Source of the DNA: Phallusia mammillata
Taxonomy: Eukaryota
Assembly: GCA_965637545.1 (NCBI GenBank)
Contig: OZ281500.1
Span: 16,802,001-16,866,000, forward strand
Direction of reading: 5' to 3'
Length of the DNA stretch: 64,000 bases
Part shown: one piece after another, positions 3,871 through 40,200 of the stretch
How the letters are laid out: every line of letters begins with the position of its first letter
How positions within the stretch are numbered: the first letter of the stretch is position 1
Made by a program: the position numbers and the translations under genes
The notes under the pieces: model-generated
The model's input: the letters and a program-made list of their open reading frames with translations, nothing else
What the model was told of the DNA's origin: nothing
The model's database searches: none

Positions 3871-5984
<2,114 letters not shown>

Positions 5985-6714
5985 TTCCATTGCCACGGAA
6001 TCCCATGGTTCCACGCATAATAAACTCTTCATCGTGATTCGAAGAGTTGTGGATTTCTCCATCGGTTTATTATAAAATTGCAATCACCATTACTAATTAC
6101 AGTTTATAAACCTAATCAATTGTTGCAGTTTTGTCGATTGTTTTCTTTTAATAATTTTAAACGTTGTAAGTTCGCTGGTTAACCTTATATAGTCGTGCAT
6201 TAAACCTGAATCATTATCGTCTATCATCTCCTACTATAGCATTAACATGGTATCTTTTCACGCCATTGCGCACGTTATCAGTCATTGATTATAATAATCA
6301 ATAAATGTAATATGTATAAAATGGTGACACGTTTTTCCAACATTACAAGTGAACAGAATAAAACTTCTTGCAAGCAAATTGTTGGATACTGCGCACCACC
6401 ATTAGATCACCAGCAGTTCCAACTTCCTAATTAGTTGGAAGTTAAGTGCATCCATAGGTCGTATCCTGGGTGCCTGTGGTCAAGCTGTATCAACGGTCCA
6501 AACCAGATCAAATAAATTAAGAGCATTAGTAACATCTTTGACATCGACGGGTCGTGTTTGTAAGACTTAGGATCTACTGCGCAAATGCAGCCTTATTTAA
6601 AAGCAGCAGCAAAGTTTAGGCGAGTAATTCAATAGCATTACTCAAAATCAATTCGTTAGGTTCGTGTCAAAGGTTGCCAAATGACAGTTGACTTTGTCGC
6701 GTCATAGTTCTGCG

Positions 6715-7780
6715 GAGAGTTGTAAGTCGGTTCTGGCTTATGTTTTTTTTTTTTTTGAAAAACGAGCTTGATTTTGTGTCAAGTTTTTTTATACATACAT
6801 TTTTGTAGCTAAATAGCCAGTTGTTGGACCTGATCTAATATCAAACAGTCATACGCTCTGTTCAAAACCAGTTGTCGATTGTTTTTGTTGTCTTGGTATT
6901 TTCTGAGGCTTCAAGTATAGGCCTGTCAATCACACTTCCGGGCCTAAACAGGCTTCTCATAAACGATTAGGGTTTGTAGTGTTTACAATTAGTATTAAAC
7001 GATCACTACGTTAACAGTATACCACGTGACCGTATGTGACCACGCCGTTTCAATCTATGAGCACGAGCAATAGCGAGAGCACATAAACAAACACTTTGTG
7101 TTATGTCTAGTCTCTGACAAAGCACTATGCAGCGAAACACTATAACTGGCGACGGGGATAATTAATAGTAATCAAGGATTGACAAAGATACTTTTAAAGT
7201 CACCTTGAAACTCGTAAAACACCTGAAAGTTGAGGAGAAAGACAGACGAAAAAGCTAAACAAATACAAGATGGCTGCTACACTGTCAGATAGTTTACCTC
7301 CATTTGACGTTACCGATCATTCAACAGCTGGTACACGTTGGACAAAATGGGTGAAACGCCTTGAAAACTTATTTGTGGTAAAAGACATCACAAATGACAA
7401 GATAAAACGTGCTTGTTTGCTACATTATGCAGGAGCAGAAGTATTTGACATTTTTGAAACATTACCAGATAATGGCAATACTGAAGAGTATGACAAAGCT
7501 CTGCAAGCTCTGAACAAATACTTTATTCCAATGAAACATATTGATTATGAAATATTCAAGTTTCGTGAGACAAAACAAGAAGAAGATGAAAACATGAATC
7601 AATTTTATTCATATCTTCGACAACTCTCTGTTGATTGTGATTTCAATGATCGAGACAAAGAGATCAAAAGTCAAATCATCAGCAAGTGCAGAGATACAAA
7701 GTTAAGATTAAGAGCACTTGAAAAGAGAGATATCAATTTGCCGGGTTCGGGCTCAAATTTCAAACCCGTTTACAACTCTG
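6715..7780. mobile_element. hAT-type non-autonomous element containing a Gypsy fragment
   Basis: TIRs GAGAGTTGTAA / TTACAACTCTG. Perfect 8-bp TSD GTTCTGCG at 6707-6714 and 7781-7788. The empty site CATAGTTCTGCGCTTGG is seen in the paralogous flank near 10863. Confidence 0.8.
6975..7741 (+). mobile_element. Truncated Ty3/Gypsy element: 5' LTR 6975-7144, PBS 7147-7154, gag from 7270
   Basis: LTR termini TGTAGTG...CACTATA followed by PBS TGGCGACG. ORF 7270 (PPFD..RWTKWVKRLENLF..LLHYAG..EIFKFRETKQ) resembles Gypsy gag and breaks at about 7741 into the hAT right end. Confidence 0.85.
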
Positions 7781-8607
7781 GTTCTGCGCTAGGTACTATG
7801 TGTACCTGACCATTTTTCCTGTTTTAGGACAATCTTTCCTAACCCCAATTTAAAAAAATCCCCATTTTTCCGATATAACAAAAAATGCTTCAAGTAATGC
7901 CGAAACTGGAACTATTTTCATGTAAATTCGACCGCTTAATTTTCAAGAAGACTTTAAACATTACCATGCAGCGTACATTATATTACGCTCAAGTGTTAGA
8001 ACCCAAAAGTTTATCTAATTTGGCCAATCTAATTCGCGTTAAAGCTTACCAGTTTGCAGAAATCAGTAAATTTTTGATTTTTTCCTGTACCCTTTTCCTG
8101 TATTATATTGGGCATAATATGTCATTCATGGGGCTCGATCGCGTAACAATGGGTTGGACAACTTGTATTTCATATAGATTTGAGTCGCAACTATTCAGTT
8201 TTAGATTTTTGCATCACAATGATTATAGATTGTGACACGCGATACCAAGCTGTACTGCAAAACATGCACAAAAGGTTGCGAACTATAACAAAAGCGTGTC
8301 ATATTTTTACACGTTTTGGGAAATCTTTATTTCTAGGTTAAAATCAGTTGTCAGTTTAAAAAACTCATAAAAACAATGCAAGCTTTGATGAAGCTATTTT
8401 ATTAAACCGGTACTAAGCCTGTTACACGATATGCATTTCAGGTTCAACAAAGGCGAAACGTATTCCAAGCTGCATCTAAAAATGTTAATAATGTCACAGA
8501 AAAAAAACTAAATCGCAGCAGCATGTGTTGCCATTACACCTTCCAAAAACGTTATCCCAAGTACAAATCTATCCGCAAATTACTTGCTTTAAGTATTGTG
8601 CCAGCTA

Positions 8608-9729
<1,122 letters not shown>

Positions 9730-12572
9730 TTTCATTGACTAACCGAATCGCTTGGTGTTTGTTATTTTATTTTAGATCGGTAAATAACTTTGTATCGAAT
9801 AGTAAACACCTTTTCACATAGTTGTGGCTTTCTCCAGCGGTTCATTATGGCATTACAGTCACCGTTACTAATTACGGTTTTTTAATTTAAATGTTTTAGT
9901 TTTGTTTCAATAATCGCAAACGTTGTTCCTAAGCTTGATGGTTAATCCTATTTAGTCGTGCATTTAAGCTGAAGCATTTTCATCGCCTATTTTAGCATTA
10001 AAAAAAGTATAACTTTTCATCGCCATTTCGCAAGTTTTCTGCCATCATTATATTATGATCAATCTTTTATTTGTATCAAATCATTTTTTTTGGTAAATCA
10101 TTATATTATGTAGAAAATGGTGACACTCTTTTCCATCCCTACAGTTGTTCAAAATAAAACTTCCAGAAAATATAGTGTATGTTGCTTGGATACTGCACGC
10201 GCACCACCTTCATCAGATCATGTATCCTGGATGCTTGAGCAAGCTCTAACAATGGTCCGAACCAGGTCATTTGTAATAAGAGTGACACAAAAAAAATTGA
10301 ATGAATTTAGATCTTTAGTGAATCTTTGACGTCCTAAAAACGAGTCGTGTTTGTGAGGGTTAAGATCTACTGCGCAAATGCGGTAGACCTTCTAACACAG
10401 GAACTCACAGCACACACGGTTGGCAAAATACCGATGGAGGGCGGAAAGAGCGCAGCTATTTAAAAACAGTAAAACTGGGATGGGGTTAGTGACTAAATTC
10501 AACATAAATAACTAGGTTTTTAGGTTAATTTTATTGTTATTATTATTATGAAACCTCAGACTAACCCTAATAGCCATAACATTAAGCAATTTTTGAACAA
10601 ACTGCATTTAAAATATTTGAGGGCGCAACCAAAGTACTGAATTTATCAAAACTGCGTGCAGTAAATTCCTGTACTAATACTTTTACCCGCAAATGCAACC
10701 TCAGTTAAAAGCTGAAAGTAAACGAAAAATCTTTATAACTGCCTGAGTATCGGTCAAGTTTAGGCGAATAATTCAATAGCATTACTCAAAAACAATTCTC
10801 TAGATTTGTGTCGAAGGTTGCCAAACGACAATTGACACACCTTTTTAATGACCTAGCCGCATCATAGTTCTGCGCTTGGTGCTTTGCGTACCTGACCATT
10901 TTTCCTGTTTTAGCTGCGAACTAATGCTACAGCACCGAAAATTTAGGGAATCATGTCAACAAAATAAATCAAAATTGAATGAGTCAATTGTTCTGAAAAG
11001 TGTTCCAACCATTTCAAGTTTGTTGTTGGGTTGTTCACGTGTTCATTGAATCGCTTTTTAATATCACTGCATTTTCGGGTTTAAAACTCCAATTTGTGTA
11101 GCTGCTGAGCCTCGTGTATCGGTACAAAAATTCGTGCAAAATAATATATTGATGCAAGCGCAGCAATACACATCGAAGGAGTTACTTAACTGAATATTAC
11201 TAATTGTCCTGGCAATTTTTGTAAATCGAAAATATCTACAGCGACAAAAAACTTGTGGACACGAAACGTTTCCAGGTGCTGATTAGAGTTGATAGTTTTG
11301 TTTTAGGTTATATTAGAATTTTTAAAGTTGCCTTTCTCTGATCGGTAATGTTTAATAAACAAATTTACGAGTGTATTTACTGATAACTTGGTAGCCTACA
11401 AGTTGGGTGATAGTTAAACATCATTTTTTTCGTTGTATTCAGAGCAGCGATCGAGTAATTTATAGGCCTAGTTTTTTTCAACGTAGCCTATACATCTCAT
11501 GAAACTTAACTTGTTGCAGTGCATAACACCATGCACTACTTTTAATTCCGTGATCCCTATTCTCGTCTGGGATGAAACACCTAAACAACTCACATGATGA
11601 AGCAACTTTTATCTCATACTAGGCCCCTGTTGTTTATGGTTTGTAATTGTTCTTATCCCTAGGTAAACTATCTGAAACAATTTAAGTTGCATTAGGCTAA
11701 TGCTCCATGTAGCAGTGGTTAATGGATTCTCCGGCTAAGTAATTTTCTGCCGGGACAAACAAACAAAGAACGGTGCATAATTCTTCAGTGCATATGCTGT
11801 TACCCCGTATTTGTTTTATTTTACAACACCAGATCGAATCACTTGTGAAAGTCGTTTACGAGTGTGCTACGCAGAAACATCAGTATATAGCCACCGAAAC
11901 GTCGTTTTGTAATTTCTGTATGCAAACAAGAAAATAGTGAAAGTAATTTTTACGCAGTCGGTTGCCACTTGTATATTTCAATTCGAAAGACCTTTGCTAG
12001 ACTACATATTGCGACACCACAAGTGTTTCCGTTGAACAATCAACGACACTTTCAACCATTCTCCCCTAATAGAGAATAATTGAAAATTATGAAAAGTAAA
12101 TGCCATAACGGTTAACGAGTAGACTTGTGAACACCCTGATTTCAATAAATATGTAACTGAAAACAAGTACGCTAGTATATTGTCTTAAACAACCACTAAA
12201 CAGGTTGACGATTTCTAATATGTGAATATGGTTTGGTACCAGTTGTTTTAAAGTCTAACAATAAATGGTATGTCATTAAAACTGTTGCAAGTTTGTACCA
12301 TCAAGCTTTGTACAATCACTATTAGGTGCATTTTAGGGTTAAAGGTGAAAGTGTATTTATAATCCTTGAAATAAAGTTACCATGTAAAAAAGTAAATTAA
12401 TTTGCACTTTGTTTGATCTGTGATGTACATTTCTTCACCTTTTTGATAAACCATGCAAGTATTAGAAAGATATTTACACATTACCAAATACTCTATGTTG
12501 TGTTATCAACAGCAAATAAAGTTAGATTTAGTTCTACAAGGAGTTAACAAAATTGGTTTAAGAACATAAAAA

Positions 12573-29993: not shown

Positions 29994-32670
29994 CTATAGA
30001 ACAGTTATGTAACGCCTTGTGTGTTATTTAGCGAGTGAATTTGTAAAGACAAGACCACATTGTTTTACTAATGGCAGCCTCCTATTCGCAATAGGCAAAA
30101 AATGCTATTAATGATCTATTTACTGACCAGAATAATGATACCCTCCTTGACCAAAGTGACAATACTTTAAACACTGATAATGATTTTTCATCCTGCAATT
30201 ATGTTCTGTCCACTCAAATTGCAACAAATGCTCCTTCCAAAAATAGTTTCTCAGCTATGTGTGTCAATATAAGATCATTGGCAAACCCTAGAAATTTTTC
30301 AAAGCTTGAATCCCTTATTGCAAATATGAATATTAAACCCACAGTTATTTGTGTTAATGAAACCTGGATAAAACAAAATAACCCTGGAGCTCTTTAAACT
30401 TAACCCTGGTATTCATTGCTACCTCCCCGGATACAACTTTATTTCCAATAGTCGTGTTATCACAACAGGAGGAGGTCTAGGTCTATATGTTGACAACAAA
30501 ATACCACATTCTCTCTGCAACGACCTAACTATAATGAAAGAAAAAACTTTTGAATCACTTTTTATACAATTTGAAGTTTCTAACACAAAAATAGTTTGTG
30601 GAACCATCTACAGATCACCAGGACAGGACGGCAGCAGCTATAATGATTTCCATAACACATTAACTGCTTCGCTTTCAAAAATAAACAAAATGCGGCTACC
30701 CACATATATGTTAGGTGACTTTAACTTTAATCTTCTGGATACCAACAATATTCATGTAGACAACTTCACAACATCCCTTTTTGAAAACTCCTTTATTCCC
30801 TTAATAAACAAACCCACAAGGATCACTGGCACAGTTAGCACATGTATTGATCATATATGGACAAATAACCATAAGCACAAAACAACCAGTAGCATTTTAC
30901 TTGATGCAATATCAGACCACTTGCCAATTATGGTTTGCACAAATGTGAAAACAAAACATCGTAACATGGTACCAAGGCAACGAAACTTTTGTAACAAAAA
31001 CATTGAGAAATTCAAAACAAATCTTTCTGACATACACATTTCCGGAGTAATGACCCAAAATGACCCAAACCAGGGCTACAGTTTATTAACTCACCTCATT
31101 GGTCAACAATTTGTAAATTGCTTCCCCTTTAGCCCCACAAAATCAGAACATGAAACACAGGTATGGTTTGATCAGGGACTCCACAATATACAAATGCTGA
31201 AGCAAAGGTCTTACAAAAAATATATGAACAAAAAGACAGAATGTAGAAAAGAAAAATATAACAAAATGTGTAACTTGTATACACACATGCTGACTAAGAA
31301 AAAACAGGAACACTATCACAAATTGTTTACAAGCACTAAACAGAACACCAAAAGGACCTGGGCCACAATCAATAAGCTGCTTGGCAGGGTGAAAACAAAA
31401 TCAACCAGTCCGATGATAATTGATGGATGTATTACAACTGAACCCAGGAAAATAGCAAACCATTTTAACCAATATTTTGGCACAGTTTCAAAGAACCTGG
31501 CTGTAAAATTAAATCCACCAAAAAAACCATTTCACTCATACTTGTCAAAAGACTGCCCCAATTCCATGTTTCTGTACCCAACCTGTCCTGGTGAAATCGT
31601 TCAAACCATCCAGTCCATGCAACCAAAACTAAGTTGTGGATTTGATGAGATCCCTGTAAAAGTGATTAAAAACTTCAGTGAAAATATTATACTTGCCCTT
31701 AGTCATGTAATTAATTTATCCTTCTGTACAGGTAATTTCTTAACTGATTTTAAACAGGCAAAAGTCATTCCAATCTATAAAAACGGAGATCGAAAATTAG
31801 CATCAAACTATCGGCCAATAAGCCTGCTCTCAAACCTGTCAAAGGTAGTAGAAAGGTTGGTTTACAATAGAGTATACTCATTCTTAATAACAACGAACTT
31901 TTTTTCCAACTCCCAGTTTGGATTTAGAAAGCAACACTCGACAAGCCATGTAACAACTAAATTAATAGCGGAAGTAACTGAGTATTTAAACAATAAAAAT
32001 CACACATTAGGCATATTCCCAGATTTGTCAAAGGCATTTGATACAATTGATCATAAAATTATGTTAAAAAAACTATATGCATGTGGTATTAAAGGGATGG
32101 CGCTTGACTGGTTTGAGAGCTATCTTGGAGGCCGATTACAGCATGTTTTTTATAATGATTTTATATCAACTAATAAACAAGGCTATTCTTTAGGAGTTTC
32201 CCAAGGTTCCATTCTTGGTCCTCTGCTTTTTATTATATATGTTAATGACTTCCCAACTTGCCTACATTATAGCACTCCTTTAATGTTTGCTGATGACACG
32301 ACTATTATAGTAAGTGCTAAAACTAAAGACGAACTGGAAAAAAAGCTAATTTAGAAATAGAAACTACATATAACTGGTTAGTTGCCAACAAACTTACCCT
32401 AAATATAAGCAAGACAAAAACAATGGTGTTCCATTCAAGCGGACATCATACAATAAATGTAGCCATCAAAGGTCAGAGACTGGAACAGGTTAAATCGCTG
32501 TCATTTTTGGGTATAATTCTAAATGAAAGACTATCTTGGAAGGAGCATGTTAATAAGCTTTACCAGACATGCAAGCGTAACCTTGCAATAGTAACAAAGG
32601 TAAACAATTACTTACAAAAAGACACACTATTAAGCCTCTACCATTCCCTCATCATGTCACACATTCGAGG

Positions 32671-32710
32671 TAAAGTCTATATAAAACACATGTGTTTTAT
32701 ATGTACTTTG
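32671..32710. mobile_element. 40-bp palindromic micro-insertion with 8-bp direct repeats
   Basis: TAAAGTCTATATAAAACACATGTGTTTTATATGTACTTTG is a near-perfect hairpin, flanked by ATTCGAGG at 32663-32670 and 32711-32718. Confidence 0.7.
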
Positions 32711-32716
32711 ATTCGA

Positions 32717-33548
32717 GGGTTTGACTAAAAGCCTGACTGCCTGACTGGCCTGACTTTGGCGGCAGTGTTTCACAAAATATTTGTTGGACTGACTTGTTTA
32801 AAAAGTATGACTACTGTTGGTTAGGAAAGGCCAAACGCCTGAATGCGTAAAACGTCATCACAGAAGGCCTGACTTTCGTGATTGTCGATTGAGAAAGGCC
32901 TGACTGCGTAAAGCGTCATCAGAGAAGGCCTGACTTTCGTGATTGTCGACTGGAAAAGGCCTGACTGCGTAAAGCGTCATCAGAGAAGGCCTGACTTTTG
33001 TGATTGTCAAATGGGAAAGGCCTGACTGTGTAAAGCGTCATCAGAGAAGGCCTGACTTTCGTGATTGTCAAATGGGAAAGGCCTGACTGTTAAAAGCGTC
33101 ATCAGAGATGGCCTGACTGTTAAAAGCGTCATCAGAGAAGGCCTGACTTTCGTGATTGTCGATTAGGAAACGCCTGACTGCGTCAAACGTCTTTAGAGAA
33201 GGCCTGACTTGGGTGATTGTCGATTGGGAAAGGCCTGACTGCAATATTAAAAGCTTGACTTGGGTGATTGTCGATTGGGAAAGGCCTAAATGCAACATGA
33301 AAGGGCCTGACTGCAATATAAAAGGCCTGACTGCAACATAGAAGGTCCGACTTAGTTGATAGTCGATCGGGAAAGGCCTGACTTTCGTGATTGTTGATTA
33401 GGAAACGCCTGACTGCGTAAAACGTCATCAGAGAAGGCCTGACTTTCGTGATTGTCGATTGGAAAAGGCCTGACTTTCGTGATTGTCGATTGAGAAAGGC
33501 CTGACTTTCGTGATTGTCGATTGGGAAAGGCCTGACTGCGTAAAATGT
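32717..33548 (+). repeat. Left MULE TIR: tandem 20-31-bp units each beginning GCCTGACT
   Basis: Units such as GCCTGACTTTCGTGATTGTCGATTGGGAAAG, GCCTGACTGCGTAAAACGTCATCAGAGAAG and GCCTGACTGCAATATAAAAG. Confidence 0.9.
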
Positions 33549-33599
33549 CACGTTACGTTAAAACGTTTAAATGACCTTTTCAATCACACTTGACGGTTT

Positions 33600-35085
33600 G
33601 TCACCAACAAGTTTTCAGCATTTGGGGACGACATCGTGTGCACTAATAACATTTCTGAATCATTGAACAAAGTTTTTAAGGAATGGTCTGAATGGTCGGA
33701 GATGCCAGTGGACTGCACGGTACTTGCTCTATTCGTTATCAAGTGTATACATTGTATAAGTTTAAAAGAAGTTTTTGTGGTTTTGGAAATGGTACCATGA
33801 AATCGGAATTTCCTATTAAAGAAGCACAGGAATGCAAATGGGCCCACGAAAAAATACCATCGGCAGGATCGATTGCAAAAGAAATTAAGAGCAAGTTTCA
33901 ACCTATTGCAAAGTCTGTGGAAAATCACCCAACGCACCGCACGTCACAAAAAGCTTTGGCAGTTGATTGCCTAAAAAATAATGCCGTTACACTGTCATTT
34001 TCTGTCAAACATTTACAGTATACAACATGTTTTCTAAATTATAGCACGCAGTACAACTTTTTCTAAAATCAAGGTGTTCATGCAACAGTACTGGCAAGTG
34101 TTTCCACATTTACGCGGTAGAAATGGTAATCGGAGTTTCACTTGAAGACAAAAAAACATATTCTCTGTCCATGTTACGCAAAAGGTCTAGAAGAGGCGAG
34201 GGAAAGTCTGGGAAAAAAAAGGGGACCAGAGATTATGATTACGACACCATCCCAGCTCCAGATTCCACCCTTCCGACACCCCATTATTCAACGCCTATCA
34301 AAGAAAAAATAAATTCTGAGTTTAGTGAGCCAGCAAAAAGTCCAGCAGCATCTCCTATTCTTAAGAAAAAATATGTGAAGGAAGAAAACAAAATACCATA
34401 CCCGTGGGAAAATGTTTCAGATATGCCTATCAAAAAAGTTGAAAACCGACAACTTGGAACATTATAGAGCTGGTTAAAACAGCAAAATGGATAGATGACT
34501 ACTCAATAGAAATCTGCATTACAGAATTTATTAACGAGTCAACTTCCTATGCCTTAGTTGTACCTTCCCACATGTTCACTGCTTTAGAACATAATCGCTT
34601 AGACTGCATTATTGGATTTATTCAGCGCCATGCCCCGCTTAATCTTAATCGGGATATCATCTTTTTTCCCCGTTTGTCAAAAATCCTGTCATTGGTTGCT
34701 TGCAGTGGCAATTGTTCAAACACAACAGATTTACCTGTTTGATTCTGTGTCGAGAACGTCATCCACAAGGATAAAAAACATCGGTCAAACAGTTTTGAGA
34801 TTCATAAACTCGTTTTATGCTGCCGCTGGACTTCTGCGTGACATGGTTTCCTGGTCCGTAATTCGCTTTAACTCCGCACCCCAACAGACCAACAGCTTTG
34901 ATTGTGGTATTCATGTCATTGTCAATGCCTATTGTATTTTATCAAAATGCCCACTTGCCTCATTCGATTCAACTTGTACAAGAAATTATGCTGTACACAC
35001 GATGTTGACTACAAAAGATTCATCCTCCCTCAACCCAATCGTCAAGTTGACAACACAAGAAAAAAACGAATATGTGGGGCAATAA
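33600..35085 (+). pseudogene. Degenerate MULE transposase C-terminus + SWIM finger + Ulp1/SENP (C48) cysteine protease
   Basis: TNNISESLNKVFK at 33642 (MULE catalytic-Glu motif); CSCNSTGKCFH at 34075-34107 (SWIM CxC..CxH); KWIDD near 34488; catalytic HW 34690, FDS 34741, PQQTNSFDCG with Cys at 34903. Several frameshifts and stops. Confidence 0.8.
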
Positions 35086-35604
35086 CGGCGAAAATATTTG
35101 AGCCTTAGGTACGCAAAGTGTTGAATTTTAAACTGCAAAACCATTAATCGCGTTTTGCTGGTATAGGTCATCACTGAATCGGGCCATTATTTCTGGCCGA
35201 CAACCTTCATAACTCCATTAGTGGCTGGTCTGATTGTTCAGCGCCTTGGTGTAAAGGAGGTTTTACCGAAAAGGAGATCCAATACATGTGTTGTGTCGGG
35301 CGAAGATGGATTCACCCAACATGCGGAGAAGTTTCGTCCGCGTCATTATACTATGTTTGTAAATTATGCAATTATAATACTCCCCAAAACCGGCCACAGC
35401 ATGTTCAATACATACCTTTCGTTTTGTGTTGACCAGGTGTTTGATGCAAGCAGTAGGTGGCTGCGAATTACCTTTTTATTTACGTCTAAAATATTTTGTA
35501 TCGTTTGTAACTAAGCTTAGAATGGATTGCTCTAATTTTAAAAAACGATAAACGATGTGGTAATACATTAGTACAAAAAGCCTTTCTCCATAATCTTCTG
35601 CGCA

Positions 35605-37276
35605 GTCAGGCCTTTATCCAATCGACAATCACCCAAGCCAGGCCTTCTCTGATGACGCTTTACGCAGTCAGGCCTTTCCCAAACGACAATCGCCGCAGTC
35701 AGGCCTTCTCTGATGACGTTTTACGCAGCCAGACCTTTCCCAATCGGCAATCACGAAAGTCAGGCCTTTTCCAATCGACAATCACCGCAGTCAGGCCTTC
35801 TCTGATGACGCTTTACGCAGTCAGGCGTTTCACAATCGACAATCACGAAAGTCAGGCCTTTTCCAATCGACAATCACCGCAGTCAGGCCTTCTCTGATGA
35901 CGTTTTACGCAGGCAGGCGTTTCCCAATCGACAATCACGAAAGTCAGGCCTTCTCTGATGACGCTTTACGCAGTCAGGCCTTTTCCAATCGACAAGCACC
36001 TAAGTCAGGCCTTTCCCAATCGACAATCACCCAAGTCGGGCCTTCTATATTGCAGTCAGGCCTTTTATATTACAGTCAGGCCCTTTCATATTGCAGTCAG
36101 GCCTTTCCCAATCGACAATCACGAAAGTCAGGCCTTTTCCAATCGACAATCACCTAAGTCAGGCCTTTCCCAATCGACAATCAACTAAGTCGGACCTTCT
36201 ATATTGCAGTCAGGCCTTTTATTTTGCAGTCAGGCCCTTTCATGTTGCATTTAGGCCTGTCCCAATCGACAATCACCCAAGTCAGGCTTTGAATATTGCA
36301 GTCAGGCCTTTCCCAATCGACAATCACCCAAGTCAGGCTTTCTATATTGCAGTCAGGCCTTTCTCAATCGATAATCACCTAAGCCAGGCCTTCTCTGAAG
36401 ACACTTTACGCAGTCAGGCCTTTTCCAATCGACAATCACGAAAGTCAGGCCGTTTCCAATCGACAATCACCCAAGTCAGGCTTTCTATATTGCAGTCAGG
36501 CCTTTCTCAATCGATAATCACCTAAGCCAGGCCTTCTCTGAAGACACTTTACGCAGTCAGGCCTTTTCCAATCGACAATCACGAAAGTCAGGCCGTTTCC
36601 AATCGACAATCACCCAAGTCAGGCCTTCTCTGATGACGTTTTACGCAGTCAGGCGTTTCATAATCGACAATCACGAAAGTCAATCTTTTCTGATGACGCT
36701 TTACGCAGTCAGGCCTTTCCCAATCGACAATCACGAAAGTCAGGCCTTTCCCAATCGACAATCACCCAAGTCAGGCCTTCTTTGATGACGTTTTACGCAG
36801 TCAGGCGTTTCACAATCGACAGTGACGAAAGTCAGGCCTTCTCTGATGACGCTTTGCGCAGTCAGGCGTTTCACAATCGACAATCACGAAAGTCAGGCTT
36901 TTTCCAATCGACAATCACGCAAGTCAGGCCTTCTCTGATGACGTTTTACGCAGTCAGGCGTTACACAATCGTTAATTACGAAAGTCAGGCCTTCTCTGAT
37001 GACGCTTTACGCAGTGAGGCCTTTTCCAATCGACAATCACCTAAGTCAGGCCTTTCCCAATCGACAATCACCCAAGTCGGGCCTTCTATATTGCAGTCAG
37101 GCCTTTCCCAATCGACAATCACGAAAGTCAGGCCTTCTCCGATGACGCTTTACGTAGTCAGGCCTTTCCCAATCAACAGTAGTCATACTTTTCAAACAAG
37201 TCAGTTCGAAAAATATTTTGTGAAACACTGCCGCCAAAGTCAGGCTAGTCAGACAGTCAGGCTTTTAGTCGACCCC
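35605..37276 (-). repeat. Right MULE TIR: the same unit array in inverted orientation, about twice as long
   Basis: Dozens of AGTCAGGC-anchored units. The terminal ~120 bp is the reverse complement of 32717-32840. Confidence 0.9.
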
Positions 37277-40200
37277 CACATTCGATACTGCATAATAAAC
37301 TGGCATCATGGTCAATCAGTTCTTATTTCAAAATTACAGGGTATCTGTAGTAAATTTATTAAAATCATTTTTGGTGTAAGGGGCTCTAAAAACATCGAAC
37401 ATGTGATGCGAAATAATGGCTTGTTAACAATAAAGCAGCTATATATGCTTGAAATATTAACGTTTATGTATAAGCATAATAACAACATGCTTCCAGCCAT
37501 ATTTGCTGATTTCTTTAAAGTAAGTCATAAAAACATTACCACACGTGCCAACTCAAACTACCTTAAACCTTATTATGGCACTAGTGTCAATCAGCAAGCA
37601 ATGCAATATATTGGTCCAAAAGCTTGGAATGACATTCCCGACCAACTTAGGAATGCAAACTCTACAAGACAGCTCATCACAAACGTCACTGCGTTTTGTT
37701 TGCACGAGTTTTGAGCACCGATTAGCTAAAAAAAAAGGCCGTTTTCCAATCGATTTTCCAATATACTTGCACAAACTTCTGAATGTTATTTTTTTACTGA
37801 ACACAAGTTGTTTTCACAAAAACATTTTCTACTTGGAGTGGTGTAGTCTTGTACATGTGTTGCTAATTATTGCATTGCTTTTGTCCTGGAACCAGTTAAC
37901 TGCTGCTGTTTGTTTGTTGTTGCAGGACTATCATAGATTAACCATCCTTCGGTCATCATAGAAAACGGCTGAGCTGACAACGAGCTATTCAAATTTGAAT
38001 TATTCATTGCAATATTTCATTGCTGTTTGTTCTTTTTTTGTGTGTGTTTTTTTTTCTTTTGTGTTAATTGTTTATGCTTTATTATTACTATTATTATTAT
38101 TATTATTATTATTATTTTACTTTAATCTTTGGACGTGTCTAAACTAATATCCTTATTTAATTTAAACGACTAAATCAACTGCCAAAATACTCGTCAATAA
38201 TTTTAACTGCAAGTGAGTCCAAAGTTAACTATTAATGGCGACTAGGGATTTGTTGTGTGTTCTTCCTTCCGGCGCTTGAAACTATCCGGCAGGGTTTCTT
38301 TCGGTGGTTTCTTTTCCTGTCGAACCCCACCCTCTTTCCCTATCACGGGTGGTTAGATTCTAGGGCCCCCGCGACTGGTCCCACCATCGTTCCCCCCCAG
38401 TCGTGTTATACTCACTCTGCGCCACACTCACTTTCTTGTGAGCACCCGACACATAACGCCTTATAATACGGTGTAGCTGCAGCGCGTTCAACTACTATCC
38501 ACCAATTGTGCCCGACACTTTTTTGCGCTTCATAACGTCTTAACGTTGCGCAGCTATTTCCGGCTTGGTGATTGTTTTAGTGCAATTGTGTTGCTATGTT
38601 GTCTTTCACCAAGCGAAATAAACTCAACTCAACTCAATATGCAAGTACAGCCGCAGATTAAATATCTCTCAATTTTAAGTGTATCCCGCGTCGAATTGGA
38701 ATAATTAAAATTACTGCTGTTTGTGCGGCAGAAAAACAATGGCTGAGTGGAAAAGTCCGTACTGGAAAAAATAGATATCGTTACAAGGTCGTAGAACATA
38801 CACCCGGCTATTACAACGGGAAAAGGGCTTGCGCTGCAATTGGAGGCCAAATTGCTCATACTGGATTTGCAGACAAATCTACTTACTGGTTAGTTTTGTA
38901 AACTTAAACAATAAAATGTTATGATTGTTTTCTGGAAATACCTTCGTTTTACTGTAATGTCAAGGGTGATTGCCATCAACAGAAAAAAATAAACAGCTTA
39001 ACTGCGTAGTATTTTTAGAACTCGCGAATTGATAGTATTACAGAATTACTGCGACAGCCCTAGGAAAAAAGTGTTTGGGTGGCGCTTAACTTCGCCAAAC
39101 AAACACCAGAAATGTTCTCCCTAACTTTGTAAAGGCTCGAAACTTACTGTCATGGCATGTCACGAATGCTAAAACTACCAAAAATGGGTTAGTTTACGGC
39201 CGCAAGATGTATATTGTATAAAAAAATCCAACAACACTACGATGGACACATGAGCAAATCATCACGTTCTCAAAAAACACATTTACCAAAAAGACTTTCA
39301 TTGTACATTTTATAGGAGCGTCATGACAGACTTTTTGGACGGTTTGGAGGTATACATTGGATTGACAGATCTGGACGTCGAAGGTACGTTCGTGTGGGAA
39401 AACGGGGTTCGAGCGAGTCGAGGATTTACATACTGGGCTTGGGGTAGGCCCATCATAGATGGAGCAAGGGGTTGTACCTATGTTGTTTATGATGACGACC
39501 GGATTGACGCAAGTTGCCACTACCTCCGCCACACCCTCTGTGAAAGAGCCCCTCTGTCGTAATTCCATTGCCACATCGAATCCTATGGTGTTTGTTCTTT
39601 TCACAAAGTCATACATATAACTTTGTATCGCATAGTAAACTCTTTCGTGATTCGAAGAGTTGTGGATTTCTCCATCGGTTTGTTATAAAATTGCATTTAC
39701 CCTTACTAATTAGAGTTTGTGAACTTATATGCTGCACTTTTGTCGATTGTTTTGTTTTAATAATTCCAAACGTTGTTCCTAAACGCATTGGTTAACCATA
39801 TTTAGTCGTGCATTTAAACTGAATCCTTATCATATCACAATATAGCATTGAAATAATATAACTTTTCATCGCCATTTCGCATGTGTATAAATGTGTATGA
39901 TATGTAAAAATGGTATCGCTCTTTTCCAACCCTACAGTTGTACAAATTAAAACTCCCTGAAAGTAAGGTGTGTGTTGCTTGGATACTGAGCACCACCTTT
40001 ATTAGATCACCGTTATTTGCAACTTCAGAATTAGTTAGAAGTTAAGTTAATCAACAGGCCGTGTATCTTTTATTCAACATCTCATTTTTGCTGGTTGATT
40101 TATGATTTTTCGTGTGGCTACAGTTTTTCTGGTGATCACATTCAATACATATGTAACTGCAAACTACAGTAGGATGTTGGCTTATACGATCGCCCAAAAG

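Follow-up and report, generated by a model that had tools for sequence, protein, structure and literature searches.

A decayed foldback-type Mutator-like element in Phallusia mammillata and the Ulp1-PHD tail of its transposase lineage

Foldback elements and Ulp1-bearing transposases

Foldback-type Mutator-like elements (MULEs) and Mutator transposases with an Ulp1 protease domain have both been described, and both bear on the locus reported here, positions 32717-37276 of a 64,000-nt stretch of Phallusia mammillata DNA (assembly GCA_965637545.1, contig OZ281500.1, positions 16,802,001 to 16,866,000 of the forward strand), hereafter the window. We read this locus as a decayed, non-autonomous member of a multi-copy family of foldback-type Mutator-like DNA transposons, one that moved by cut-and-paste into the tail of open reading frame 2 (ORF2) of a long interspersed nuclear element (LINE) with a 9-bp target duplication, and put the probability of this reading at about 90%. 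By description the element resembles the Rehavkus and NOF foldback MULEs, a likeness drawn from published accounts, and we do not file it under either. Rehavkus is related to MULEs, makes a target site duplication (TSD) of 9 bp, has a PHD finger, and carries tandem repeats within its long inverted termini (PMC6446971; 10.1101/2024.12.02.626372), the finger being listed for its transposase in Table 1 of PMC6446971. Elements such as Rehavkus-1_TC from Tribolium share with our locus and its intact relatives the 9-bp TSD (not clean at our locus), the single open reading frame (ORF), the PHD finger and the long inverted termini with variable subterminal repeats, but Rehavkus has been described only from arthropods and annelids and with no mention of Ulp1 (PMC6446971; 10.1101/2024.12.02.626372).

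Two further foldback systems are similar in their ends. The active foldback MULE Muta1 of Aedes aegypti has a G-rich terminus (GGGTCTACCC, compared with GGGGTCGAC here) and terminal inverted repeats (TIRs) made up of tandem subterminal units; the arms are far shorter, with nine repeat copies against the 24 and 46 cores counted below, and the accessible part of its report notes neither protease nor PHD finger (PMC5499845). The Tm1 Mutator/Foldback elements of root-knot nematodes, in the sections of the report available to us, have composite TIRs that are made of tandem motifs and vary in length, duplicate 9 bp of the target, encode a MULE transposase and exist in numerous non-autonomous versions; they also have short non-inverted sequences outside the TIRs that are a possible parallel to a 48-bp filler found here (PMC3169594). 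They differ in belonging to the Phantom subclass and in having a 496-aa transposase and a 14-bp repeat unit, and those sections note no protease or PHD finger (PMC3169594).

The protease, too, has precedents. Ulp1 domains are encoded in Mutator transposons of hydra, lancelet and plants, and the Ulp1 and PHD domains of Mutator transposases were aligned in Fig. 1e of the same study (PMC2836005). An Ulp1-bearing animal Mutator lineage is not new: the fusion is old, widespread and already published (PMC2836005). As far as the citing paper describes them, the MuDR-type Ulp1 transposons of Hydra and Branchiostoma (Bao & Jurka, Repbase Reports 2008/2009, cited in PMC2836005) are likewise animal elements with an Ulp1 C48 domain; compared by description, they differ from our locus in host, and only a shortened copy is at hand here. 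Hydra vulgaris proteins are among the relatives that we found. Unlike in the plant Ulp1 MULEs, the C48 domain here makes up the C-terminal part of the transposase ORF, with a PHD finger after it. The ULP domain of the plant elements generally lies in a separate or rearranged gene, often without a transposase. These plant elements, KAONASHI/KI-MULEs in Arabidopsis and CUMULE in melon, are Mutator elements that also carry a C48 Ulp1-like domain (Hoen 2006, van Leeuwen 2007, as cited in PMC2836005). Finally, Ginger1 of Hydra has an Ulp1 tail, in one family Ulp1 plus PHD, at the C-terminus of an animal DDE transposase, but that transposase belongs to an unrelated, Gypsy-integrase-like superfamily, and the element has short TIRs and no foldback arms (PMC2836005).

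Termini, insertion site and coding remnant

The locus is delimited by two inverted, G-rich ends (Table 1). The left terminus reads GGGTTTGACTAAAAGCC from 32717 and the right one, in reverse complement, GGGGTCGACTAAAAGCC, ending at 37276; the outer sequence is GGGTTTGACTAAAAGCCTGACTG... on the left and, reverse-complemented, GGGGTCGACTAAAAGCCTGACTG... on the right. These G-rich termini (GGGTTTGAC... and GGGGTCGAC...) open long TIRs of the type found in the MULE superfamily. Their outer 110 bp agree at 100 positions (91%) and give way to kb-scale arms, and a 25-mer from this part has exactly two occurrences in the window, one per strand, where none is expected by chance. As the termini differ at 10 of the 110 positions, bases 4 and 6 included, the insertion is not recent. 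The left TIR has ACTAAAAG in common with the terminus of a relative from Ciona intestinalis (L003, below).

Both arms are tandem arrays. With their termini they measure 0.83 kb on the left (32717-33551) and 1.69 kb on the right (~35590-37276), the right arm being about twice as long. The 7-mer CCTGACT is present 24 times in the left arm, always on the + strand (counted over 32717-33600), and 46 times in the right, always inverted (35550-37276), with a modal spacing of 30-31 bp; the other 59.4 kb of the window hold only two copies. Subterminal tandem-repeat arms with unequal repeat numbers (24 vs 46 cores) mark the element as foldback-type. A search of the rest of the 64 kb found neither the element again nor its termini, subrepeats or host LINE. 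An earlier examination of the letters alone (the sequence-only reading) had proposed a foldback Mutator element with G-rich termini and kb-scale repeat TIRs, and all three proposals hold, the first also through homology to proteins with a MULE core (see below).

The element sits within a non-long-terminal-repeat retrotransposon. Upstream, a 606-aa ORF (30534-32351) matches Pfam RVT_1 (1.1e-28) and, weakly, Exo_endo_phos, and the LINE frame (...SLIMSHIR / YCIINWHHG...) is unbroken across the insertion, the host resuming at 37277 and continuing to about 37714. The 9-bp duplication is real, but not clean. An exact copy of CACATTCGA is present on both sides, which bears out only in part the TSD proposed by the sequence-only reading: the left copy lies 48 bp outside the terminus, and the 9 bp that abut the left TIR (TTGATTCGA, 32708-32716) match the right flank (CACATTCGA, 37277-37285) at only six of nine positions. 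The intervening 48-bp filler ends in ATTCGA, the last 6 bp of the TSD, has a DNA fold of -13.3 kcal/mol (z -4.8) and forms, with adjoining host and TIR bases, a hairpin spanning 32656-32725; its sequence occurs nowhere else in the 64-kb window. It may be repair filler, what is left of another small insertion, or a terminal extension of the family that is not inverted, such as Tm1 has. The locus is a dead transposon within another dead transposon, with no evident effect on host genes.

Table 1. Features of the element and its flanks in window coordinates.
Feature	Positions	Strand	Basis or remark
Host non-LTR retrotransposon (LINE) ORF2, upstream part	30534..32668	+	Pfam RVT_1 1.1e-28
Exact left copy of 9-bp duplication, CACATTCGA	32660..32668		Last host sequence before insertion; identical to 37277-37285
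48-bp near-palindromic filler, from exact TSD copy to left TIR	32669..32716		Self inverted match
Left TIR, unique outer part (GGGTTTGACTAAAAGCC...)	32717..32826	+	100/110 identical to reverse complement of 37167-37276
Left arm, 30/31/61-bp subrepeat array with CCTGACT core	32827..33551	+	Tandem-repeat analysis
Internal-deletion junction, 5' gene part with DDE core lost	33552..33593		No P0045 1-250 match in window
Transposase piece A, just downstream of DDE core	33594..33725	+	40-53% identical to P0045 257-299, P0154 278-320 and others
Transposase piece B, frame differs from A	33726..34005	+	Aligns with P0045 300-391, P0154 331-419
Piece C: stop, SWIM motif, basic linker, PAPDS	34006..34464	+	35-53% identical to relatives
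Peptidase C48, N-terminal half (KWIDD...)	34443..34680	+	Aligns to C48 N-half of relatives
Peptidase C48, catalytic half	34663..35082	+	Pfam PF02902 and PDB matches
Stops in every frame, C48 to PHD	35083..35234	+	Other copies' indels at 35059, 35066, 35111, 35189
Decayed PHD finger	35235..35369	+	Alignment to relatives' tails
Right arm, 20/31/51/61/92/153-bp subrepeat array, inverted core AGTCAGG	~35590..37166	-	Tandem-repeat analysis
Right TIR, unique outer part (reverse complement GGGGTCGACTAAAAGCC...)	37167..37276	-	Match to left TIR
Right copy of 9-bp duplication, CACATTCGA	37277..37285		Abuts right terminus

Between the arms, the + strand carries the C-terminal ~60% of a Mutator-like transposase ORF, starting just after the DDE core. 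The left array breaks off mid-unit at 33551, the coding remnant begins ~40 bp further on, and a 1159-nt contig from another copy departs from the window sequence at 33569. Residues 1-250 of the related protein P0045, which include the PF10551 domain with the DDE core, had no tblastn match anywhere in the window. What remains of the gene is divided among three frames into five or more pieces, the frame being broken at least five times, and it contains a stop codon in frame (34042-44). Because the catalytic core is absent and the frame is shifted, this copy is at best a non-autonomous relic and encodes no transposase-SWIM-Ulp1 protein, contrary to what had been proposed from the letters; with the DDE core deleted, the frame broken and a stop in frame, an active autonomous element is ruled out.

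The coding pieces A-E, of which D and E make up the Peptidase_C48 domain (34443-35082), and the PHD piece were searched separately. Pfam recognised only the catalytic half of C48; pieces A-D and the PHD piece on their own had no meaningful match, and were identified by alignment to relatives for that reason. The Pfam MULE models (PF10551 / PF00872) matched no open piece of this copy, and the sequence-only reading, which had named PF10551 as a check, obtains no support from it here. Pieces A-C nevertheless align directly downstream of the PF10551 domain in P0045, P0154, P0157, P0165, P0171 and others. Several motifs expected from that reading are in place: TNNISES at 33642-33662, within piece A, and the basic linker LRKRSRRGEGKSGKKKG at 34174-34224, which is conserved in relatives and followed by PAPDS at 34252-34266. 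The proposed SWIM finger is borne out as a CxC..CxH pattern (CSCNSTGKCFH, 34075-34107) that relatives conserve, but not as a domain match: PF04434 is found, sub-threshold, in three of six aligned members (best E 7.5e-4) and not on this copy. The motif TY.LS.LRKR..EGKSGRKKPRK.D..(I)PAPDS is shared by this copy with proteins of mites, with Styela clava models and with a protein from a metagenome. The segment between SWIM finger and protease is thus a conserved linker and not a random spacer; it looks like a nuclear localisation signal plus another conserved motif.

The breaks in the frame were compared with other copies. Contigs from three DNA runs of the same organism, aligned to 33520-35620, reveal a multi-copy family (83-110 short contigs per run, 88-100% likeness). 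Other copies differ by single bases at 33732, 34005 and 34662, the sites at which the frame of this copy breaks, with one extra base after 33732 and after 34005. The single-base indels coincide with the breaks, and the breaks are therefore copy-specific damage, not introns. Runs labelled as RNA contained next to none of the stretch. One 434-nt contig, from a run guessed to be RNA (X22), covers the protease region 34599-35066 of a variant copy (~93% alike) that has 17 bp in place of 118 bp, and the same variant occurs in a DNA run. We regard this contig as a weak hint that some family member is transcribed, and do not take it as proof of transcription or splicing.

The Ulp1-PHD tail and its relatives

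The catalytic half of the protease matches PF02902 with an E value of 1.7e-12 (48.1 bits, cut-off 20.7), and the catalytic His (34690-92), Asp (34741-43), Gln (34885-87) and Cys (34903-05) are all present, as had been proposed. These four residues align with those of proteins in the PDB, namely the Ulp1-like SUMO protease 6dg4 (9e-7), SENP8 and yeast Ulp1, and HW, FDS and QQTNSFDCG fall on the catalytic positions of 6dg4 and SENP8 in canonical order and spacing. As SUMO proteases and the NEDD8-specific SENP8 are both among the best PDB matches, a preference for SUMO or NEDD8 cannot be read from the sequence. Among 13 relatives aligned over the protease, His-Trp, the Ser after the catalytic Asp, Gln and Cys are at least 90% conserved, and H, W, S, W, Q and C are nearly invariant. 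In this copy the domain is split near 34662 by a frame break in a T6C4 run, where another genomic copy is one base shorter.

A PHD finger follows. The sequence-only reading had noted a decayed PHD-like cysteine pattern at 35355-35514; a damaged but genuine PHD homologue exists, located at 35235-35369, ~120 bp upstream and in another frame. The stretch before it (35083-35234) would be either an intron or decayed sequence. The finger aligns with the C-terminal tails of ten relatives and retains seven of eight zinc ligands, the fourth Cys being replaced by Gly (CCVG vs CV.C in relatives). This Cys is at least 90% conserved in the family alignment, and relatives have all eight ligands; the complete Cys4-His-Cys3 set is thus lacking here. 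Pfam PHD matches eight of the 11 aligned members and not this copy alone. A profile built from the alignment retrieved almost only PHD fingers from the PDB (best 7.6e-4), among them PHF23, Alfin-like, MLL5, JARID1A, BPTF, PHF2/8/13 and Pygopus; the matches include fingers that read H3K4me3. Within the alignment the Trp of the CRKW.H motif is invariant and the Trp before the first Cys nearly so. Such Trp positions resemble the aromatic cage of H3K4me3 readers.

Full-length relatives place these pieces in a single protein. A word-index search with the C48 piece found nothing among candidates of 88-280 aa, and an exhaustive search of 1.8 billion proteins returned 302 matches, of which the best, ~35% identical, were other PHD-tailed or MULE-linked proteins. 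P0045 (843 aa) is matched by pieces A, B, C and E and the finger in the same order; it is an uninterrupted ORF on a 4.7-kb metagenome contig, with Pfam matches to MULE (29.0 bits vs 27.6) and C48. A search with P0045 gave 67 relatives; among their named sources are Ciona intestinalis, Tetranychus urticae, Leptotrombidium deliense, Pinctada imbricata, Ruditapes philippinarum, Ptychodera flava, Hydra vulgaris and two frogs. At least ten single-ORF proteins (P0045, P0154, P0157, P0158, P0153, P0161, P0162, P0165, P0171 and P0179), from mites, molluscs, sea squirts and uncultured eukaryotes, carry the pieces of the window in the same order at 26-53% identity to it. Their Pfam architecture is CG-1-like / MULE / (SWIM) / C48 / PHD: several exceed the thresholds for MULE and C48, and some also for PHD and CG-1. 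P0178 (Ruditapes) exceeds the cut-offs for all four (CG-1, MULE, C48, PHD) and P0165 for three; in both, PHD is above the cut-off, as the Rehavkus type would have it. These alignments support a fusion of Ulp1/C48 protease and PHD finger with the transposase in one ORF across the lineage, and the animal MULE lineage with a fused Ulp1-type protease suggested by the sequence-only reading is confirmed by the at least ten diverged, collinear proteins.

The loci of two relatives are also foldback elements, with subrepeat arms of 1-2.5 kb. At L002 an intact 881-aa ORF (P0154) lies between 2.5- and 1.1-kb arms of 71-bp units (32 vs 12 copies), the termini (GGGTAACACTAA...) match each other at 100% and are directly flanked by a perfect duplication of 9 bp (TAAAAGTTT); from these features the element appears to be young and possibly active. 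It occupies 4170-11987 of a 1.7-Mb contig in ENA metagenome assembly ERZ22157276; the cluster to which its protein belongs comprises 41 sequences. At L003 (Ciona intestinalis AP043581.1) the arms consist of 22/61/83-bp units, the termini read GGACAACACTAAAAGG, and the 9-bp duplication, CCCAAATTA, is again perfect. The whole transposase clade is therefore characterised by foldback arms, by GG-rich termini that end in ...ACTAA, and by duplications of 9 bp. DNA comparison of three relatives' loci with the window found no similarity; the window and the relative families share only homology at the protein level plus the short terminal motif. A CG-1 / DDE / SWIM / Ulp1 / PHD transposase with foldback arms is conserved in animals as distant as mites, bivalves, a hemichordate, hydra and sea squirts, with the catalytic residues of the protease retained throughout, and the intact relatives P0154 (L002) and P0045 (L001) are better material for functional tests than this copy.

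Competing explanations and possible roles

Taken together, the arms, the target duplication and the homology of the coding remnant support a foldback-type Mutator-like element from an animal. Several points weigh against the reading given at the outset. We saw no intact ORF in any copy of exactly this family, and since the nearest proteins are only 26-53% identical, the full domain architecture had to be deduced from distant relatives. The TSD is not clean, with the 48-bp filler at the left junction, and the Pfam SWIM and PHD models stay below threshold on this copy. The evidence from RNA comes down to the single 434-nt contig, from a variant copy and a run only guessed to be RNA, and we infer the binding of the subrepeats by the transposase as well as the activity and substrate of the protease.

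We propose the following course of events. In intact relatives a single ORF encodes, from the N-terminus, a CG-1-like DNA-binding domain, the MULE DDE core, the SWIM finger, the basic linker, the Ulp1/C48 cysteine isopeptidase and the PHD finger. In this family the transposase would bind the subrepeats with the CCTGACT core, which in either arm recur about every three helical turns, as well as the GG-rich termini, cut by way of hairpins on the flanking DNA, and integrate with a 9-bp stagger. MULE transposases have been found to cleave via hairpins on flanking DNA, and binding, cleavage and excision of Muta1 are all enhanced by its terminal motif GGGTCTACCC and by its subterminal repeats (both from the accessible text of PMC5499845). 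In this copy, an internal deletion starting in the left arm would have removed the catalytic core while sparing the last ~60% of the ORF and both arms, after which frame breaks, a stop codon and the loss of a zinc ligand would have accumulated.

It is conceivable, if rather unlikely, that this copy can still be mobilised in trans by intact members of the family, which would be compatible with the decayed, non-autonomous copy that we favour and concerns current activity only. It has kept both termini and its 24 and 46 putative binding cores, and family members that are 99-100% like it over short contigs have an intact frame at its break points; the relative L002, with its 100% identical termini and 881-aa ORF, illustrates that such elements can be recently active. 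Yet the terminal 110 bp differ at ten positions, bases 4 and 6 among them, and mutations of the terminal motif lower Muta1 binding and cleavage in the part of that study available (PMC5499845). Moreover, no intact autonomous copy of the family was seen, and the left junction is disturbed by the 48 extra base pairs.

Very little speaks for the protease, with or without the PHD finger, being a fragment of a host SENP/Ulp gene captured in Pack-MULE fashion instead of a functional part of the transposase. MULEs do pick up fragments of host origin, according to the portion of PMC8277862 at hand, and the protease of this copy does lie in a frame other than that of the transposase pieces, but the shifts of frame fall at single-base indels that other genomic copies lack. 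The order transposase-SWIM-linker-C48-PHD is found in one ORF in at least ten full-length proteins that are only 25-50% identical to each other, from which it follows that the protease belongs to the transposase and was not captured from the host; in the relatives that share this order, the catalytic H, Q and C hardly vary. Nor did the 1.8 billion proteins contain a near-identical host gene such as a capture would call for, the best matches to the C48 piece being ~35% identical and PHD-tailed or MULE-linked. An unlinked, captured protease, which the sequence-only reading had itself named as the outcome that would undo it, is thus rejected, C48 being in frame with the transposase in at least ten relatives. 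Least probable of all is a domesticated, transposase-derived host gene for a SWIM-Ulp1-PHD chromatin protein: Styela clava NCBI models P0014, P0004 and P0153 show SWIM/linker-C48-PHD without a DDE core and are annotated as ordinary genes, but the coding part here is flanked by kb-scale inverted arms and a target duplication, lies within the ORF of a LINE, is interrupted by frame shifts and a stop codon, and is a member of a multi-copy family, which refutes domestication for this locus.

For the transposon lineage to which this decayed copy belongs, the question is then what the tail does. The Ulp1-PHD tail is under long-term purifying selection as a transposase part, and would most likely direct a deconjugating activity, for SUMO or a related ubiquitin-like modifier, to chromatin that the PHD finger recognises. 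Help with post-transposition repair has been proposed for Ulp1 tails of transposases (PMC2836005), and anti-silencing, as the sequence-only reading suggested, repair after transposition and regulation of the transposase are candidate roles. In one version, which we consider doubtful, the tail would be a counter-silencing or targeting module: the PHD finger would read methylated H3K4 on open chromatin and the tethered deSUMOylase would remove SUMO from nearby silencing or repair factors, shielding the element or its new insertion from SUMO-dependent heterochromatin formation. Neither this analysis nor the literature searched yielded evidence that the Ulp1 tail counters SUMO-dependent silencing, and no functional study of transposon-encoded Ulp1 in animals was found in that literature. 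If true, such a module, kept from cnidarians to chordates, would amount to a widespread animal anti-silencing device.

Two groups of relatives come from less expected sources. MULEs are reported to be almost absent from chordates (PMC6446971). Relatives of the transposase reach even frogs, being annotated in Ascaphus truei and Mixophyes fleayi (P0156 and P0213); the Ascaphus protein has 644 aa with MULE and Transposase_mut domains, is 38% identical over 74% of P0045, and is encoded on a 491-Mb chromosome. P0197 (1043 aa; CG-1-like, MULE and C48) is listed at NCBI as an 'Ulp1 family isopeptidase' in the bacterial metagenome-assembled genome of Candidatus Thiodiazotropha taylori, and is most likely transposon DNA of the animal host, a clam, that was binned into the genome of its symbiont.

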